DNA of 62,702 nt, the filler included, from Klebsormidium nitens (lineage: Eukaryota > Plantae > Klebsormidiophyceae), in assembly GCA_000708835.1 (NCBI GenBank). It is 5 parts of 5 records of this genome, joined end to end, with 100 filler letters (N's around TTAATTAATTAA, not from the genome) between each part and the next. Parts side by side here need not be neighbours in the genome. Positions count along the whole stretch, not along the records: positions 43,329 to 62,702 come from DF237505.1; 4 more parts are not named here. One strand, written 5' to 3'. The notes under the pieces are model-generated. The model did not search any database, was not told the origin of the DNA, and worked only from the letters and a program-made list of their open reading frames with translations. Positions 46,185 through 62,702 of this stretch are shown here, in pieces (the stretch's first letter is position 1; each line of letters begins with the position of its first letter). The translations under genes were made by a program, and so were the position numbers.

Positions 46185-47240
46185 ATGCCGAAGGCCCAGC
46201 ACGTCTGCGACACGTGTCACAAAGCGTTCTCCACTCGGAAGGACCTGACAAGACACATTCGCACACATACTGGGGAAAAACCTTATTTATGTGACGAAGA
46301 GGATTGTAGGACGGCATTCTCGACAAATCATGGACTGACCGTCCACAAACGTACTCATTCAGGTATAAGGCCCTATGAATGCGACGAGATAGGTTGCTTT
46401 GCAGCATTTACGACGGCTGGCAATCTTGCAATGCACAAGCGAACACATTCTGGCAAAAAACCTTACTCTTGCGACGAATGCTCTTCGAAATTCACTCAGA
46501 GTGGTGGATTGATCATCCACAAACGCAAGCACTCGGGCGAGAGACCTTACAAGTGCGATGAACCATACTGTACTGCTAGTTTCGCGACGGGTGGCAGCCT
46601 TGTAACCCACAAACGGAGACACGCTGGTATAAAACCTCACGAATGCGATGAACCAGGATGCTCCGCTACCTTTGTGGACGGTGGTGCTTTGAAAACACAC
46701 AAGCTCATTCATACTGGCGTCAAAGCATTTGCATGCGACGAGCCGGGTTGTACGTCAGCATTCATCAGTAGCGGCCGTTTGGTCGATCACAAGAAAATGC
46801 ACGACCCAAACAGGCCTCGGATGAACTCAAGAGGAGAGCAAGAGATCGCGCGAATACTGGAAGACTGGAAGGTAGCTTATCGACAAGAAGTCTTATTGGG
46901 GGACTCCCGTCGCAGATATGATTTCGGTCTCTTGGATGTGAGGTTGCTGATCGAGTTCGACGGCTATCAGCACTTTCATCCCGTAGCATTCTCGTGGCAG
47001 ACGGATCACTTCGCTGAATATCAGAAGAGGGTAGTCATCGACATCGAGAAGAACGAATTGGCCGAAAGTCAGGGCTATCTACTCTTGAGGATACACCACG
47101 AAGACCTCACGAACATGGAACCGGTCATTGCAGAAGCCATAGAAGATGCTACGCTCGGAAAGACGGGTGTCGTCTTCTCCCGGACAGAACCTTACCGTGA
47201 GAATATGGACAAATGGATAGGCGGTTCGGTGCTGATATAA
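46185..47240 (+). CDS. Seven tandem C2H2 zinc fingers fused to a Vsr/DUF559-like PD-(D/E)XK endonuclease
   Basis: Seven CX2-4C...HX3H fingers with TGEKP-type linkers, then SRGEQEI...RYDF...LIEFDGYQHF...DIEKN..A...GY.LLRI. Confidence 0.9.
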   Translation: MPKAQHVCDTCHKAFSTRKDLTRHIRTHTGEKPYLCDEEDCRTAFSTNHGLTVHKRTHSGIRPYECDEIGCFAAFTTAGNLAMHKRTHSGKKPYSCDECSSKFTQSGGLIIHKRKHSGERPYKCDEPYCTASFATGGSLVTHKRRHAGIKPHECDEPGCSATFVDGGALKTHKLIHTGVKAFACDEPGCTSAFISSGRLVDHKKMHDPNRPRMNSRGEQEIARILEDWKVAYRQEVLLGDSRRRYDFGLLDVRLLIEFDGYQHFHPVAFSWQTDHFAEYQKRVVIDIEKNELAESQGYLLLRIHHEDLTNMEPVIAEAIEDATLGKTGVVFSRTEPYRENMDKWIGGSVLI

Positions 47241-47258
47241 GGAACGCACATGCCCTCA
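47227..47258 (+). repeat. 32-bp direct repeat, right copy (contains the ZnF-nuclease stop codon)
   Basis: cggtgctgatataaggaacgcacatgccctca; TAA at 47238-47240. Confidence 0.95.
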
Positions 47259-47383
47259 GAATAGCATTCACAAAAACATCTACACAAAGATCCGTCTAAT
47301 AGCCGGCAAAAAATCTTCTGAGCTTAGACGTAGGCTGGGGGTCTGAGACTCCGATATGCCATACTAGTCCAAGAAAGTGCAGA

Positions 47384-48016
47384 ATGGATCGATCGAAGCA
47401 AGAGCAACTGCGGGCGGAGTACCGCCGGCTCTATGGACTCGGCTTGACACCCGTCTCTGTAAATATAACCAGCAGAGAGCAGGACGGCGTGCTGAAGAAG
47501 GTGGCAAACTTTTGCACCCAGTGGCGGGGGGTCACTCGGGACAATTGCTTGGACTGTTACTGGCCCGATGGCAACTCGATCGCGATCCGGACGGGGGAGG
47601 AGTCGGGGGTCCTCGTCCTGGACATCGACAACGCCTCCTCCGACGAGAAGCTCAACGGGATGCAGCTGCACGAGATGTGGACCCTGCGGCACGGGGAGCT
47701 GAACACGTGGACCGCAAAGACGGGTAAGGACGGGCTTCATCTGTACTTCAAGTTCCCGACGGAGGCCAGCTACGGGGTGAACAACCGGACCGGGTTGGTG
47801 GTCGAGGACAAGCTGTACGGCGTGGATATTCGCGGCCAGGGAGGAGTCATCTTCAGCCCTCCCTCCTCCTACCTGGCACCGGACGGGACCGAGCTGAGGT
47901 ACGAGTGGGTCAAGAGCCCTTTCGACACGCCGCTCGCGGAGGTGCCCGAGTGGCTGGAGGAGGTGCTGATCGAGAACGACAGGATCGGCAATTTCCTTTG
48001 GAATCCAGCAATCTGA
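47384..48016 (+). CDS. Prim-Pol primase-polymerase domain, no helicase attached (probably truncated)
   Basis: SIAIRTG..SGVLVLDID, GLHLYF, GVDIRGQGG...PPSSY, YEW...PEWL; homologous to the Prim-Pol domains at 2015 and 9523. Confidence 0.85.
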   Translation: MDRSKQEQLRAEYRRLYGLGLTPVSVNITSREQDGVLKKVANFCTQWRGVTRDNCLDCYWPDGNSIAIRTGEESGVLVLDIDNASSDEKLNGMQLHEMWTLRHGELNTWTAKTGKDGLHLYFKFPTEASYGVNNRTGLVVEDKLYGVDIRGQGGVIFSPPSSYLAPDGTELRYEWVKSPFDTPLAEVPEWLEEVLIENDRIGNFLWNPAI

Positions 48017-48773
48017 AGCCCATGCTAGATATGGATGAACGAGGGGGTCTGAATACGGTCTGGCGTGAACGCACATCTTCATGCGATGGCCACAGGTGAT
48101 GGATGACCGCACCTTTGGTAGTACTACTGGGAAACCAAGCGAATGCATTCAAGGCATCTGCACCAGGGGCATTGCGGCATCCTAGCGATAGAGTCAGAGG
48201 ATCGTCTAATTCCGAGGAGGATATGTACATGTATGAGGCATCATCTATTGTGGTTGACCGTGACGACGTGATGGGAGCATCGGTATCCCAACTCGTGGTC
48301 CCAGCTTCGAAACCCAACAATGCATGCAGGTCATCACCAGGGAATATGAGTCGGAACTTATCTAGGATCCTGTACTTGAGAGAGAAGCTGAAACACTTGT
48401 GCACGCGGTCATATGTCACGGAGAAGGGATTCAGGATGGAATAGGCTGGCCAGTTCCCTTCCTTGTATGCCTTTGAGGTAGAGTTCATGAGCCTCTGCAA
48501 CTCATCAGCTAGAGTGTACTCTGTATAATGTCCTGTCGGTATCCTTATGCTTAAGGTTGAGCTCATACCCGACGACTGTTCCTCCCAACTGAATACCTGA
48601 TTACCTTCCTTCACATTGTACTCTACGTTAGGAATGCAAGCAGTCACTAATTCTACTTTGTACACGTCTGTTAGAGGAGTGGGAAAGTAGACTCTAAAAT
48701 CACTAGCAGAGGGGAATTGAGCTCTGTCCCTGAATGTGGAGTCCACCACGAGGAGTTCCTCTCGGAAGTCCAT
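47910..48773 (-). CDS. Putative penton/minor-capsid-like jelly-roll protein
   Basis: N-terminal LVVDSTFRDRAQFPSASDFRVYF...VYKVEL...IPNVEYNV.EGN pattern recalls Polinton/PLV/NCLDV penton-like proteins; beta-rich. Confidence 0.55.
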   Translation of the reverse strand: MDFREELLVVDSTFRDRAQFPSASDFRVYFPTPLTDVYKVELVTACIPNVEYNVKEGNQVFSWEEQSSGMSSTLSIRIPTGHYTEYTLADELQRLMNSTSKAYKEGNWPAYSILNPFSVTYDRVHKCFSFSLKYRILDKFRLIFPGDDLHALLGFEAGTTSWDTDAPITSSRSTTIDDASYMYISSSELDDPLTLSLGCRNAPGADALNAFAWFPSSTTKGAVIHHLWPSHEDVRSRQTVFRPPRSSISSMGFRLLDSKGNCRSCRSRSAPPPATRAPPRAACRKGS

Positions 48774-48807
48774 GTCCTTACAAACACCAGACAATAAACC
48801 AGTGGCC

Positions 48808-49221
48808 CTAGAGACGCATATCCTCAGGAAGCTGCGACTCTGCCCCATCCTCTAGAGAGACTTGCTCGACTTTGTGCTCGATCAAATCCAGCGTGGTCCT
48901 TCTTTTCCACTGCTCATGCTTGACTTGCTCTACCATGAAGAGGTTGAATTGCATGGAACCTCTCATTGACTCTTTCAATGCAACCACCTCTGCCCTCAGC
49001 TTTAAGATTTCCTTGCACAACTCTTCTGTTGACATGCTATTCACGTCAGGAGGTGGTACTTCCTCCTCAATGGGACGAAGGTACTCTCTCCGCACGGCGT
49101 CCGCTTGCTCCCTCGTCCAAGCGGGTCCAGTGTTGCTCACCAGCTCCTTCAGGCGGTCCATCTGGGCCTTCGCTCTGGCCTCCAGGCGTGCTGCCTCGCT
49201 CCCTCCCCCATCAGGATCCAT
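48808..49221 (-). CDS. Hypothetical coiled-coil protein
   Basis: 137-aa ORF collinear with the neighbouring gene. Confidence 0.55.
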   Translation of the reverse strand: MDPDGGGSEAARLEARAKAQMDRLKELVSNTGPAWTREQADAVRREYLRPIEEEVPPPDVNSMSTEELCKEILKLRAEVVALKESMRGSMQFNLFMVEQVKHEQWKRRTTLDLIEHKVEQVSLEDGAESQLPEDMRL

Positions 49222-53127: not shown

Positions 53128-54510
53128 TCATGAGGATTTAGGATTTTCAGTCTCGGGCTTCTCAGCTTTCAAAGCCCTCTTTGCATCACCCCTCTCCTTC
53201 AACACCGCTTTCACGTACGTCTGCCTCATTGACTGCCTCTCTATCTCCCTCATCAAATCTCCCCTTAGGTCCTCTGCTAACATCTCTCCCAGGTTCTCCT
53301 CGACTCTCTGTAAAGTCTCCAGGGCGAACTCGTCGTACCTTCTAAGCTCGACAAAGTAGCCTTTCATTCTGTTGCAAAAACTACACACCCAAGAAAAGTT
53401 GCCAGCATAAGATTCAACCGCAACGTCCGTTCGATCTATCTGGGGAAAGCTTCCCGGCCCTCCACGCAATCGGTTCCACTCGCACTGCATGTCACAGATC
53501 CCGCACCTTCGCTCCTGACGCAACCAGGCAGCCATCGCCTCCTCATCTGTCAAAAGCTGCGGCGTCCTACCGACGATGCTACACCTTGCCTTGCTGGCTG
53601 TGTTGCGGTTGGTCACACTCTTGTGAACGAGTGACCTCTCGTGCTCTTTGGAAAAGAACTGCATGTATCTGTTTTCTACAGGTCCGAGCACTTTCCTCAT
53701 GTCAGGCAGCTTTCCCGTAAGCGTGTCCGACGCCTTTAAAGATTCGTATGTCGGCAGGTTTGCTTCAACCTCCTCCCATATGGCGAGTTGGGTGAACTTT
53801 ACAGCCTCCTTCTCATCGTCGTCCTCATCATCCTCCACTTCAGACCCTGCCGTTATATTGCTCCGGCTGTTCTCTTCCATCTTGCAGAATATCTCCATGA
53901 GGGTCAAGCACATGTCTTTGAGTTCTGGATCGTCCTTTTTCAGAAGCCCGTCCAGGATCTTCCGGGTGTCCTGTCGTACCACGTTCAGCCTTTCCTTGAA
54001 GGCCACCGATCGAGTTAACCCATTCCGACAAGGCGAGCACATCCACGCTGCTTTCAGAACATCGTCCAACCAGAGGTGGGATTCGTGCAAGGGTATGGCC
54101 GTTCCGCACAGCGTGCACCTATCCAGAAAGTCGGGAACCTCGACCACTTCGATCTCGTCTGACTCGTAAATAGCGCACCTCATCAGTTTGAACAGACTGT
54201 CGACTTTGTCCTTCAACAGAACTTCGTCCGAATCGGTCTGCTCGACCACTTCTCTCATCTCACGAATCATCCGTCGGGTTTCGTCGGCTAGAGCCAGGAT
54301 CTGAGCAATCTTTTTCTCGTTCCTCTCATCTTCCTTGGCCTTGCGCTTTTTCAGGAGCTTTTCCTTCTTCTCCGCCGCCTTCCTCTCTTTCTCCTGGAGC
54401 GCCTCCGCAGCCGTGTAAACCCTCACGTTCCCCTCGGTTCGTGGGCGCTCGATGCTGATATCCGCGCTCATGCCATCGGCTATCTGTAGAGTGTACTTGC
54501 GTTTGGCCAT
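53128..54510 (-). CDS. Large protein with C-terminal HNH/His-Me-finger-like nuclease motif and an internal CxxC..CxxC
   Basis: RCGIC...QIDR.D....Y..NFSWVCSFCNRMKG. Likely start MAKRKY (54510), because the longer ORF runs through promoter-like repeats. Confidence 0.55.
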   Translation of the reverse strand: MAKRKYTLQIADGMSADISIERPRTEGNVRVYTAAEALQEKERKAAEKKEKLLKKRKAKEDERNEKKIAQILALADETRRMIREMREVVEQTDSDEVLLKDKVDSLFKLMRCAIYESDEIEVVEVPDFLDRCTLCGTAIPLHESHLWLDDVLKAAWMCSPCRNGLTRSVAFKERLNVVRQDTRKILDGLLKKDDPELKDMCLTLMEIFCKMEENSRSNITAGSEVEDDEDDDEKEAVKFTQLAIWEEVEANLPTYESLKASDTLTGKLPDMRKVLGPVENRYMQFFSKEHERSLVHKSVTNRNTASKARCSIVGRTPQLLTDEEAMAAWLRQERRCGICDMQCEWNRLRGGPGSFPQIDRTDVAVESYAGNFSWVCSFCNRMKGYFVELRRYDEFALETLQRVEENLGEMLAEDLRGDLMREIERQSMRQTYVKAVLKERGDAKRALKAEKPETENPKSS

Positions 54511-54555
54511 TTCGTGTCTGATCGGAATGATGGTAGTGTGGCCCATGAGGTCCTC

Positions 54556-54737
54556 CTTATATAGGCAGATCGTGGCGTCCGAAACTGCAGTCCTGCAAGT
54601 TCTAGATGCTGGCGAGAAAACCGTCCGAAGCTGGCGTCCGAAACTGCAGTCCTGCAAGTTCTAGATGCCACGTGGAGAGAGAAACACGTCCGAAGCTGGC
54701 GTCCGAAAGCGCGGCTCGGACCCTATATAGGCAGGAT
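54556..54737. promoter_or_regulatory. Repeated divergent-promoter-like region
   Basis: ggcgtccgaaactgcagtcctgcaagttctagatgc twice (~54574, ~54633), gtccgaagctggcgtccgaaa twice, tatataggcag twice (~54558, ~54724); lies between divergent ORFs. Confidence 0.6.
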
Positions 54738-59560: not shown

Positions 59561-60133
59561 GTGGTCTCCGCACAGACCTTGGCTCTAGCGTTTGCCGGGC
59601 GTGACATGCTAGAAGTAGACATCATGACAGGTAGTGCGGGTGTAGGAACCGTGGTCACGGATGGCTTGCTGGCAGCCACGTCGGGAACGATCAGACACCT
59701 GGTCATCGACATAGCCAACCTACACATGGCCGCGGATGCGGGCAGCCCCCACCCCATTACCGGGTGCACTGGTTACGACCTAGACAAGGCGAGAGCGTTG
59801 GCGGTGGCGTTGCGATCGAAGAGGGTCTATAGTATTTCTCTGCGCGCGGGCAGGGAGTGCGGATCGTTGGGCGATTGTGTCTGCCCTTCGGACTTGTTGG
59901 AGGTATTGGTGAGGGAGAGTGGGGCACGATTCGTCTTGTCCGACGCACTTGTGACTGCTTTTGTCGGCATGAAGGAGGAGGATTTTAGAGCTCGCTTCGG
60001 AGATAATCCGAACCCGCTCGGCATAGAAGTCATGAAAAAGCAGATATGCTGCGCTCAGCCTGTGAGGTTGCAAAGGTCTCGTTGCTGTGGCCCCCAAGGT
60101 CAGGGTCTCGAAAGTCTACCCGAGACTTGGTGA
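59561..60133 (+). CDS. Hypothetical protein
   Basis: ORF collinear with the F-box gene; no recognised motif. Confidence 0.4.
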   Translation: MVSAQTLALAFAGRDMLEVDIMTGSAGVGTVVTDGLLAATSGTIRHLVIDIANLHMAADAGSPHPITGCTGYDLDKARALAVALRSKRVYSISLRAGRECGSLGDCVCPSDLLEVLVRESGARFVLSDALVTAFVGMKEEDFRARFGDNPNPLGIEVMKKQICCAQPVRLQRSRCCGPQGQGLESLPETW

Positions 60134-60315
60134 GAGCATTCGGGGGGCACTGGATAGATCCTAGCTCCATATAACACTTGCGAATCTGAATCCTATCATC
60201 CCTTACTCTGTTCCACTTCTCGTGCACAAGCCATGATCATTCAACACTTGTAATGCATCTGACGTTGCACCTCGAAATGTTTCCAATTGGGAGATCACCG
60301 TACGATTCGATGTTA

Positions 60316-62584
60316 CAGTCTGTCCAGAATAAAATGGCACACCTGGTTTTCTGAAAAAACTGATCCTCAAGAGTATCATGGAAGCGTCTCGGACGCCAGC
60401 GTCCGAAACCCCAGCTCCAGAAGCTTCTAGATCGCCACGTCGAAACGACAGGCGTCCGAAGAGAGACGGCCCAGAAGCATCTTCCTTTCGGACGACCGTC
60501 CGAGAGAGATCTCGCTCGGAGTATATAAACCAAAAAACTTCATCTCTCACGACATTCACAGATGGACGATGGAACGGATGGCTTCGAGGGGACGAAGAGG
60601 AAGCGCCCAGACATCGCTCTACGAATCCAACAGCGAAGGGGCAAAGAGACCTCTGTGGTACAGACGGGATGGAACGTCCTCTGTCAGGACCTCGTAATCA
60701 GAGACCGGATCGAAGAGATCATCCCAGAAGTGACTCGCATCCGAATCGAGACCTGCCTCCTGCTCAACCTGCACTTTATCCGCCTTCTCGAGGAAGGGAG
60801 ACCCATACCCGTCATCGACCAGAATCTGGTCGGTCGGGCGATGCAGTGCACATATGCCAGAAAAGCACAAGCAGACTCGGAACTCCAAGAGACATTCGAC
60901 CATCACTACCTGCCCCTCTGCCCCAATCGCCCAGTCAACAGCTGCCTTCCTCGCATCACCAACATCCTCCTGGACCTCCGCAACCAACTGCTCTGCAACA
61001 TCAAGAATCACGTCTCGGTCCTCTTCCAGTCACGACACAAGGCCTTCATGAAGCTCCTCCTGCGAGAAGCAGCCCCGGGCGTGCCTTTCTTCGAGGAGGC
61101 GGACGAGGATCTGGAGTCGTGCACCCGGCTGTTGACGACCGCCACGTTGTGGCGCCCGAACGAAACCGTCCGAGAGTTGCTGCCGGAGTATCCTCGCATA
61201 TATGGAAGGATCCCAGAGGCTGCCATCGAGTGCCTGCAAGATCTGGTAGACTCAGTCAGGCCGGAGGTCGGGCCGCTGCCTGCGGCGCCCCAGAGCAGAC
61301 CTCACCTCTACATGCCCTGGATGAGGATCATCAGCGAGGAGTCATCGGACCGAGAGCTGCGGTCTTTCTCGCTGGTGCCTCATGCCTCCTTCTCCGCACC
61401 TTTCATCGCAATCACTCCTACCACATGGCCCGAGCTGCAGCCCAAGACCGGCAAGAGAAAAGCTCCCAGAGAGCTCCGTGATGCTTTTCCCTCCATCGGA
61501 AGGCTGGAGAGCGGTGGGAAGACCTTCACAGACCGGATCACCACGGACGGAGTGTCCGCTAGCGTGTACTTCTTGGTGGAGAAGAGAACGCCCCCTCCGG
61601 AGGACAGAATGGTCCACATCCACCCCAAGCAGCGCGTGGTGGGATTGGACCCAGGAAAGCACCCTGACTTCCTCACGGGCATCGCTTTGACGGGAGATTG
61701 GGACGGAATCGAGTGTCAAGAAGAGATCATTGGCCTGGGGACCAAAGACTTCTACCACCGAGCGGGATTCAAGAAACGGACGTTCCTCATGCACACCTGG
61801 ATGTCCAGAGACCTGGATGTAGCAGCATTCAACGAGAATGCTCCTTCGGGGAACACCGTGAACCTGGAGGACTTCGGGAAGAGGGTGACCTCCGTCTGTG
61901 CAAACCTGTACGTCCTGGTACGCTTTCACACCGCGAGAAGGGTCCGAAAGCTGAGAAGGCGAGTGACTATCAAGAAGCAGATCGAGGTGGACAGAGCCTG
62001 CAAGAGGATCACGGCAGGGAAGAAGACCGTGGTAGCTTTCGGGGCCGCACAGGTGTGGCCTGGCAGGACCAAGAGGCAGTGTGGTCCATGCGAGTCAGTG
62101 AAGAGGCGACTCAGCAGCCACCACAAGGCGACGGTGGTCATGACAGACGAGTTCAGGACGAGCCAGGTGTGCAGCACGTGCCACTCGGACGTCGGCAAGT
62201 TCGCCGTGCTGAAGAGGCAGCATGTGACGGAGGATGGGATTCCGACTGTGACCGAAGGAGGGCGTCGTGAGGACGAAGACGAGGACGGAGGAGGGAGGAC
62301 GAGCTACAAGACATGCCACAACGTGCGAGCGTGTACTAACCCGCTCTGTCGCATGGTGTGGAATAGAGACGTCAATGCAGCTCGTAACATAGCTTGGATC
62401 TGTATGAGCATAGCGAGAGGCGAGGACAGGCCGGCAGAGTTCACGAGAGCAGGAGTCTGGGGATGACAGATAGATAGTTCGAAGACATAGCTGCCTAGAA
62501 ACGAGTTCATCTAGGCACCTCGGTGAGAACCCGAGATACGGCTGAGTACTATGGAGAGTGTGCCATTTTACTCTGAACGGACTG
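60316..62584 (+). mobile_element. Non-autonomous Tc1/mariner-type element carrying Fanzor (2269 bp; 27-bp TIRs; TA TSD)
   Basis: Left TIR cagtctgtccagaataaaatggcacac (60316-60342) matches the reverse complement of 62558-62584 at 24/27 positions. TA at 60314-60315 and 62585-62586. No transposase inside. Confidence 0.92.
60562..62466 (+). CDS. Fanzor: Fanzor (eukaryotic TnpB-like RNA-guided RuvC endonuclease)
   Basis: 634 aa, uninterrupted. RuvC-I GLDPG, RuvC-II TDEFRTSQ, Zn finger CSTC...CTNPLC, RuvC-III NRDVNAARNI; N-terminal KRKRP NLS-like motif. Confidence 0.95.
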   Translation: MDDGTDGFEGTKRKRPDIALRIQQRRGKETSVVQTGWNVLCQDLVIRDRIEEIIPEVTRIRIETCLLLNLHFIRLLEEGRPIPVIDQNLVGRAMQCTYARKAQADSELQETFDHHYLPLCPNRPVNSCLPRITNILLDLRNQLLCNIKNHVSVLFQSRHKAFMKLLLREAAPGVPFFEEADEDLESCTRLLTTATLWRPNETVRELLPEYPRIYGRIPEAAIECLQDLVDSVRPEVGPLPAAPQSRPHLYMPWMRIISEESSDRELRSFSLVPHASFSAPFIAITPTTWPELQPKTGKRKAPRELRDAFPSIGRLESGGKTFTDRITTDGVSASVYFLVEKRTPPPEDRMVHIHPKQRVVGLDPGKHPDFLTGIALTGDWDGIECQEEIIGLGTKDFYHRAGFKKRTFLMHTWMSRDLDVAAFNENAPSGNTVNLEDFGKRVTSVCANLYVLVRFHTARRVRKLRRRVTIKKQIEVDRACKRITAGKKTVVAFGAAQVWPGRTKRQCGPCESVKRRLSSHHKATVVMTDEFRTSQVCSTCHSDVGKFAVLKRQHVTEDGIPTVTEGGRREDEDEDGGGRTSYKTCHNVRACTNPLCRMVWNRDVNAARNIAWICMSIARGEDRPAEFTRAGVWG

Positions 62585-62606
62585 TACTATACAGCATGTG
62601 GTCCGG
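62440..62606 (+). ncRNA. Predicted Fanzor omega-RNA (scaffold through the right TIR plus flank-derived guide); 5' boundary approximate
   Basis: Position matches TnpB/Fanzor omega-RNA. Hairpins tgcctaga/tctaggca (62492-62517) and ctcgg/ccgag (~62519-62535). Guide would be ctatacagcatgtggtccgg after the TA. Confidence 0.7.
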
Positions 62607-62702
62607 TTGCCATCTGCGTTGCACCTCGAATATATTGCCGGTTGAGATTGCTGGTTGTCAGTACGTTTCTTAGTATACATTCTCCTCTTCATCATGAAGA
62701 CA

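Follow-up and report, generated by a model that had tools for sequence, protein, structure and literature searches.

A Fanzor1 gene of the KnFNuc family in a probable Tc1/mariner-like element of Klebsormidium nitens

Whether a compact unit in a stretch of Klebsormidium nitens DNA is a transposon that carries an intact Fanzor nuclease, what kind of transposon it would be, and how much of it was already known are the questions raised by this locus. The window (the whole stretch of DNA analysed, 62,702 nt with filler) contains the unit at 60314-62586, within a piece of ~19 kb; the unit spans 2,273 bp including the TA dinucleotides at its two ends, or 2,269 bp without them. It was read as, very probably, a non-autonomous, cut-and-paste transposon of the Tc1/mariner-like kind that carries a single gene, an intact and intronless Fanzor1 belonging to the family of KnFNuc, a K. 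nitens Fanzor1 (Jiang et al. 2023, PMC10530073). An earlier note on this DNA, prepared from the sequence alone, had listed TA-CAGT...ACTG-TA ends, terminal repeats alike at 24 of 27 positions, an uninterrupted open reading frame (ORF), the acidic residues of the active site, a zinc finger and a motif resembling a nuclear localization signal (NLS), and all of these were present at the positions it gave.

The ORF between the repeats (60562-62466, + strand) encodes 634 amino acids in a single uninterrupted exon, stop codon included, and was collinear with its homologues from the first residue to the last, so that no intron is needed. An in-frame TAA stands upstream of its ATG at 60526, inside a TATATAA box. 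Close relatives at 57-92% identity were retrieved by word search, several of them above the Pfam cut-off for PF07282, and a profile of seven relatives retrieved 1921 relatives (E<=1e-3) among 1.84 billion representatives. The family alignment (A4) comprised 60 relatives with 20-92% identity to the window protein, and PF07282 was matched by 51 of the 60. The A4 profile matched three solved Fanzor1 proteins: SpuFz1 of Spizellomyces punctatus (8gkh) over its full length (E 9.9e-59), Parasitella Fz1 with its best stretch C-terminal over ~150 profile positions (E 3e-49), and Guillardia Fz1 over nearly its full length (E 6e-44). The match to the Fanzor2 protein L79 of Mimivirus covered the last ~70 residues only (E 4e-10).

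An AlphaFold2 model was built with A4 (predicted local distance difference test, pLDDT, 89.6; predicted template modelling score, pTM, 0.87) and compared with the PDB by Foldseek. SpuFz1 structures came first (E 1e-21; template modelling score, TM, 0.68-0.73), followed by the Parasitella and Guillardia Fanzors and then by Cas12f, Cas12m and TnpB (TM ~0.25); TM to Fanzor2, TnpB and Cas12f was 0.23-0.25. By sequence and by fold, the protein was nearer to the solved Fanzor1 proteins than to Fanzor2 or TnpB. A model made from 10 close relatives alone (pLDDT 41) was unusable and was replaced by the 60-sequence alignment model.

Catalytic residues were mapped onto SpuFz1 after the 394-residue maltose-binding protein (MBP) offset of the PDB chain had been subtracted. 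D363, E530 and D603 of the window protein were paired with SpuFz1 D383, E541 and D606, within the aligned motifs GLDPG and VIDPN, DEFRTS and DEYKTS, and NRD and NRD, respectively. In SpuFz1, these three residues together with N385 coordinate two magnesium ions (Saito et al. 2023, PMC10432273). D363, P364, G365, S534, R602 and D603 were invariant in A4, while G494, E530, T533, C537, C540, C591 and C596 were nearly so, and D363, E530 and D603 were kept in the collinear relatives of 57-92% identity. The canonical RuvC-II position was occupied by G494 (VAFGAA), and E530 lay 36 residues downstream, as in the rearranged RuvC site described for all Fanzors by Jiang et al. 2023 (PMC10530073) and in the conserved G500/E536 pair of Bao and Jurka 2013 (PMC3627910). 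The Fanzor1 motif given by the latter authors, D-X(125,275)-[TS][TS]-X-X-[C4 zinc finger]-X(5,50)-RD, was found in the window protein as D363, 169 residues, T533 S534, QV, C537..C540...C591..C596, five residues, and R602 D603.

Two NLS-like motifs were seen, KRKRP at residues 12-16 and GKRKAP at residues 297-302. Residues R15, P16 and D17 were nearly invariant among close relatives, and residues 1-9 had very low pLDDT in the AlphaFold model. A eukaryotic locus together with a putative NLS (KRKRP) is what would be expected of a Fanzor1, and Jiang et al. 2023 (PMC10530073) put NLSs at the N-terminus of Fanzors to the test. Assignment of the ORF to Fanzor1 is supported by the family profile, the fold comparison and the residue mapping onto SpuFz1; judged by sequence and by the predicted structure, the protein appears to be the complete, catalytically intact Fanzor that had been claimed for this locus. 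In another frame, a further ORF of 367 amino acids (60378-61481, + strand) runs over the first half of the Fanzor ORF; it is Pro-, Arg- and Ser-rich and seems to be a side effect of the high GC content.

At the left border, TA (60314-60315) was followed by CAGT, and at the right border ACTG was followed by TA (62585-62586). Inverted arms of 29 nt at 60314-60342 and 62558-62586 were reported by a repeat finder as 90% complementary, and a script counted 26 matches of 29 with the TA and 24 of 27 without it. A degenerate 27-mer of the repeat had two sites in the whole window, both of them arms of the element (0 expected; 100 shuffles), and a search of the 19-kb piece with this 27-mer brought up no further repeat and no 'ghost' element. 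CAGT termini beside TA are the classic Tc1 end. Short terminal inverted repeats of the Tc1/mariner type were present (27 nt, 24/27, CAGT termini); a DD(E/D) transposase was not, the Fanzor ORF being the only substantial gene between the repeats. A TA target-site duplication at the element borders is plausible; since a single copy is visible, the flanking TA is inseparable from the last 2 bases of a palindromic repeat end. Of the minimal Tc1/mariner-type shell proposed in the earlier note, the TA, the CAGT, the 27-nt repeat and the lack of an internal transposase were all recovered, and the superfamily is an inference from one copy. Outside the element, an imperfect direct repeat was observed in both flanks (60256-60293 and 62611-62647), with 31 identical positions over ~38 columns, an exact 14-nt core and a score of 37 (shuffle mean 16, maximum 25). 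Its copies would lie ~83 nt apart with the element removed, and it could be a local host duplication or a piece of another repeat.

This layout has been described in other Fanzor1 elements. SPu-1 of S. punctatus is 2149 bp long, with 33-bp repeats, a TA duplication and one 633-aa single-exon Fanzor1 without a transposase, and SPu-3 and ESv-1 have the same layout (Bao and Jurka 2013, PMC3627910). The window element (2273 bp, 27-nt repeat, TA, 634 aa) is nearly identical to SPu-1 in layout, and its protein resembles SpuFz1 in fold (TM ~0.7), in the catalytic triad and, presumably, in a target-adjacent motif (TAM) ending in TA (CATA for SpuFz1); the proteins differ in being ~16-17% identical and in their hosts, a fungus and a streptophyte alga. 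In PUl-1, PUl-4, ROr-1/2, MCi-1 and PGv-1, Fanzor1 occurs together with a mariner transposase or with mariner repeats and a TA duplication, and PUl-4 is a Fanzor1-only element with repeats in common with a confirmed mariner (PMC3627910). With PUl-4 and the other mariner-repeat elements, the window element would share Fanzor1 as sole gene, repeats of 24-33 bp, a TA duplication and dependence on a mariner transposase in trans, whereas the matching autonomous mariner is known for PUl-4.

The top matches of the window protein were K. nitens proteins. The ORF was 100% identical to residues 367-1000 of GAQ89740.1 (KFL_005560180, UniRef A0A1Y1IFW6, 1000 aa, 'hypothetical protein'); the exact 634-aa sequence was absent from the protein collection, in which the 90% cluster of KFL_010640010 includes KFL_005560180. 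Four annotated K. nitens copies were roughly equidistant at 87-92% protein identity. KFL_010640010 (590 aa, 92% identical) is ended by the contig end and otherwise intact, KFL_007780030 (P0001, 864 aa) has an internal duplication and a disturbed zinc finger, and KFL_006650100 (P0003, 730 aa) diverges before RuvC-III, so that the window copy was the sole annotated K. nitens copy both complete and intact. As annotated, KFL_007780030 and KFL_006650100 are damaged after about residue 589, one by a tandem repeat of residues ~260-530 and the other by unrelated sequence ahead of the RuvC-III aspartate, and the JGI relative P0005 likewise lacks the C-terminus. No second K. nitens Fanzor family was found in a profile search with names, and no relatives of the window protein were found in metagenome collections by scans with the protein or the alignment.

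The earlier note was correct in stating that a Klebsormidium Fanzor has been characterised. According to Jiang et al. 2023 (PMC10530073), KnFNuc, a Fanzor1 of K. nitens, lacks introns and occurs 5 times per genome; it co-purifies with RNA from the 3' non-coding region adjoining the right end, recognises TTA as its TAM, makes focused nicks in both strands and reaches up to 2% editing in human cells. The window Fanzor is alike in species, in being a Fanzor1, in lacking introns and in being multi-copy (5 copies in the paper; here, 4 annotated paralogues besides the model of this ORF), and the KnFNuc TAM equals the T-TA at the left border of the window element; the repeats, the TA and the probably chimeric GenBank model, in contrast, are not described in the main text of PMC10530073. 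The supplements of Saito 2023 and of a 2023 NAR paper make no mention of Klebsormidium or of the GenBank accessions. The Fanzor here belongs to the same K. nitens family as KnFNuc, and the finding is already known. Identity to a characterised locus had been named beforehand as grounds for denying novelty, and with KnFNuc characterised in 2023 most of it is removed. The window copy may be identical to KnFNuc or may be a paralogue that differs from it by 8-13%; being the only complete, intact annotated copy, it may well be the one cloned. Already published are the family, its activity, its TAM and its RNA (2023) and the transposon layout (2013), and the sequence is already in GenBank. The GenBank model GAQ89740.1 deserves correction, and the natural TAM at the left end with a presumed guide at the right end provides a concrete substrate for the re-cutting question in a cut-and-paste eukaryotic transposon.

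In the cycle proposed for this element, the Fanzor would bind an RNA transcribed from the non-coding 3' stretch that adjoins the right end, as in the literature on the family and its relatives, and the resulting ribonucleoprotein (RNP) would, by analogy with KnFNuc, make RNA-guided double-strand cuts in DNA carrying a TTA TAM beside a guide-matching sequence. A transposase supplied in trans, presumably of the Tc1/mariner type given the TA and CAGT, would bind the repeats and move the element. Read-through beyond the right end would yield a guide equal to the right flank (~62587-62606). With T-TA (60313-60315) closing the left flank, TTA followed by the right flank would be the sequence of the empty site, hence TAM plus target; the vacated site could then be re-cut by the element's own nuclease, and homology-directed repair from a sister copy would restore the element. 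For bacterial TnpB, repair from the element-bearing copy after cutting has been shown. ISDra2 TnpB (IS200/IS605) is comparable in being a RuvC and zinc-finger nuclease, in its right-end guide RNA and left-border TAM and in the proposed re-cutting of the vacated site. It differs in being a distant structural match (Foldseek E 4e-5, TM 0.24), in retaining the canonical RuvC-II glutamate, in having no large REC domain and in belonging to a transposon that moves as a single strand by 'peel and paste' and has neither inverted repeats nor a duplication. Coordinates of the element's features are collected in the table.

Table 1. Positions along the window of the features of the Fanzor1 element and of the GenBank gene model that overlaps it.
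Feature	Position	Strand	Basis
Predicted intron of GenBank model KFL_005560180, 653 nt, joining host exons to the Fanzor ATG	59909..60561	+	Model comparison
T + TA, putative target-site duplication; TTA is the published KnFNuc TAM	60313..60315	+	Sequence; possible link to TAM
Left terminal inverted repeat, 27 nt, CAGT start	60316..60342	+	24/27 match to right arm
TATATAA box, 40 nt 5' of the Fanzor ATG, candidate promoter of the element's own	60522..60528	+	Sequence only
Fanzor1 ORF, 634 aa	60562..62466	+	Profile, fold, perfect match to residues 367-1000 of GAQ89740.1
Codons for KRKRP (residues 12-16), NLS-like, disordered N-terminus	60595..60609	+	Sequence
RuvC-I aspartate D363 (GLDPG)	61648..61650	+	Invariant in A4; aligns to SpuFz1 D383
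Relocated RuvC-II glutamate E530 (DEFRTS)	62149..62151	+	Aligns to SpuFz1 E541
Zinc-finger (TNB) segment, C537, C540 ... C591, C596	62170..62349	+	PF07282 E 2.4e-5, just below cut-off; cysteines nearly invariant
RuvC-III aspartate D603 (NRDVN)	62368..62370	+	Invariant in A4; aligns to SpuFz1 D606
Putative omegaRNA/fRNA scaffold: ORF end, 91-nt 3' non-coding stretch, right repeat	62440..62586	+	By analogy with KnFNuc and SpuFz1
Right terminal inverted repeat, 27 nt	62558..62584	-	Repeat finder, script
TA past right end, putative target-site duplication	62585..62586	.	Sequence
Putative natural guide, first ~20 nt of right flank	62587..62606	+	Inferred from sequence and the published TAM and RNA position; guide length assumed

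Several observations weigh against reading the unit as a Tc1/mariner-like transposon with an intact Fanzor1 that could re-cut its vacated site. Compared as a single protein with Pfam, the window protein scored 24.8 bits against the Cas12f1-like TNB (zinc ribbon) family PF07282 (cut-off 26.3; E 2.4e-5), and its matches to solved structures were weak (SpuFz1, E 0.01; Parasitella Fz1, E 0.03). A shallow profile (A1) was also marginal against solved Fanzors, within E 0.01-0.04 when taken together with the single protein, and the window protein fell far below the cut-offs of the NCBIfam TnpB models. With direct single-protein matches this weak, it is the family profile and the fold that support Fanzor membership. 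One copy only is visible as DNA, and the TA duplication, the mobility and the Tc1/mariner assignment all hang on it. A T ahead of the TA is a 1-in-4 event, and folding of the 3' region was no more stable than that of shuffled sequences (z 0.07 and -0.73), with no Rfam match in this region. The activity may be old, given protein differences of 8-13% among the K. nitens paralogues and 3 mismatches over the 27 positions of the repeat arms. We know of no Fanzor for which a homing role has been shown. The termini of SPu-1 read GTGCGG in place of the CAGT of the window element, and its superfamily was left blank by Bao and Jurka (PMC3627910).

These points bear on two alternatives of unequal weight. 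The more serious, though less likely than not, is that the ORF is still open in an immobile relic, the element no longer moving and the nuclease having no current role. The rough equidistance of the K. nitens paralogues (87-92% protein identity), the breakage of 2 of the 4 annotated paralogues ahead of RuvC-III, the arm mismatches at 3/27 and the lack of a second repeat or 'ghost' in the 19-kb piece would all agree with this, but the catalytic and zinc-binding residues are all intact in the window copy, and purifying selection is suggested by relatives as distant as 57% identity that still have the ORF at full length. A member of the K. nitens family is, moreover, active in vitro and in human cells, and the multiple copies were taken as a sign of recent mobility (Jiang et al. 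2023, PMC10530073). Rather unlikely is the alternative that the shell is not Tc1/mariner at all and that the unit belongs to an unclassified family of Fanzor-only elements with short inverted repeats, like SPu-1, moved by some other enzyme, the TA being simply the repeat terminus. A single copy is in view, and its self-complementary TA adds to the inverted repeat, bringing it to 29 nt; none of the 18 ORFs of the piece had a transposase domain, and SPu-1 and SPu-3 stand without a superfamily in Bao and Jurka despite their TA duplications. Against it, CAGT beside TA is the classic end of a Tc1 element, the KnFNuc TAM itself ends in TA, and mariner transposases or repeats with TA duplications occur in the several Fanzor1 elements named above (PUl-1, PUl-4, ROr-1/2, MCi-1, PGv-1).

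Two further accounts, both very improbable, concern the surroundings of the element. Under the GenBank model KFL_005560180, a fusion protein of 1000 aa would end in the 634 aa of the Fanzor, the first 366 residues of GAQ89740.1 being drawn from upstream host ORFs (from 58748 through 59585-59908) and spliced to the Fanzor across the 653-nt intron. The model exists, and its intron has GTGAGA as donor (59909) and CAG, immediately 5' of the Fanzor ATG, as acceptor; yet the host ORF continues in frame to its own stop (60131-60133), which the intron skips together with the left repeat and the TATA-like box, and the other K. nitens copies lack an N-terminal fusion, two of them having different model artefacts. 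Because the relatives all begin at the same Met with a conserved N-terminus, GAQ89740.1 is probably an artefact of gene prediction in which host exons were fused to the Fanzor ORF. The chance is slimmer still that the 59909/60561 splice is real and the fusion driven by the host promoter, which would make it an early domestication of an RNA-guided nuclease in a streptophyte alga. The other account is that the element came recently with a neighbouring giant-virus insertion. A position at the edge of a viral island, fitting virus-mediated spread, had been proposed for it, and this was not supported. Where GC is lower, the piece does contain a primase-polymerase (Prim-Pol) ORF and a DUF5901 ORF; proteins with this fold (TM 0.70-0.83) are indeed encoded by giant viruses; and the ORF at 53128-54654 gave a weak atlas lead to Nucleocytoviricota, below the reliable range. 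The Prim-Pol and DUF5901 ORFs, however, are the only virus-like or mobile-looking ORFs of the piece and lie ~12 kb from the element, behind cell-type ORFs (CENP-S-like, HisKA-like and JmjC); the viral proteins are only 12-20% identical to the window protein; no relative of the window protein, the DUF5901 ORF or the repeat was found in IMG/VR; the GC content of the element is similar to that of its surroundings; and several dispersed, diverged copies of the family occur in the genome. Virus-mediated spread is without direct support, and nothing ties the element to recent viral delivery. An IMG/VR contig matching an 18-mer of the repeat was rejected as a chance match, the adjacent bases not continuing the repeat.

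In the distant part of the piece, three ORFs were observed in the stretch 46185-48848, where GC drops to 0.49-0.52: a multi-C2H2 zinc-finger ORF (46185-47240, + strand), the Prim-Pol ORF (47384-48016, + strand, E 4.8e-19) and, overlapping the latter on the opposite strand, the DUF5901 ORF (47910-48848, - strand, E 5e-14). The only relatives found for the DUF5901 ORF were three unnamed proteins from Logan assemblies. The stretch may be a foreign or mobile insert.

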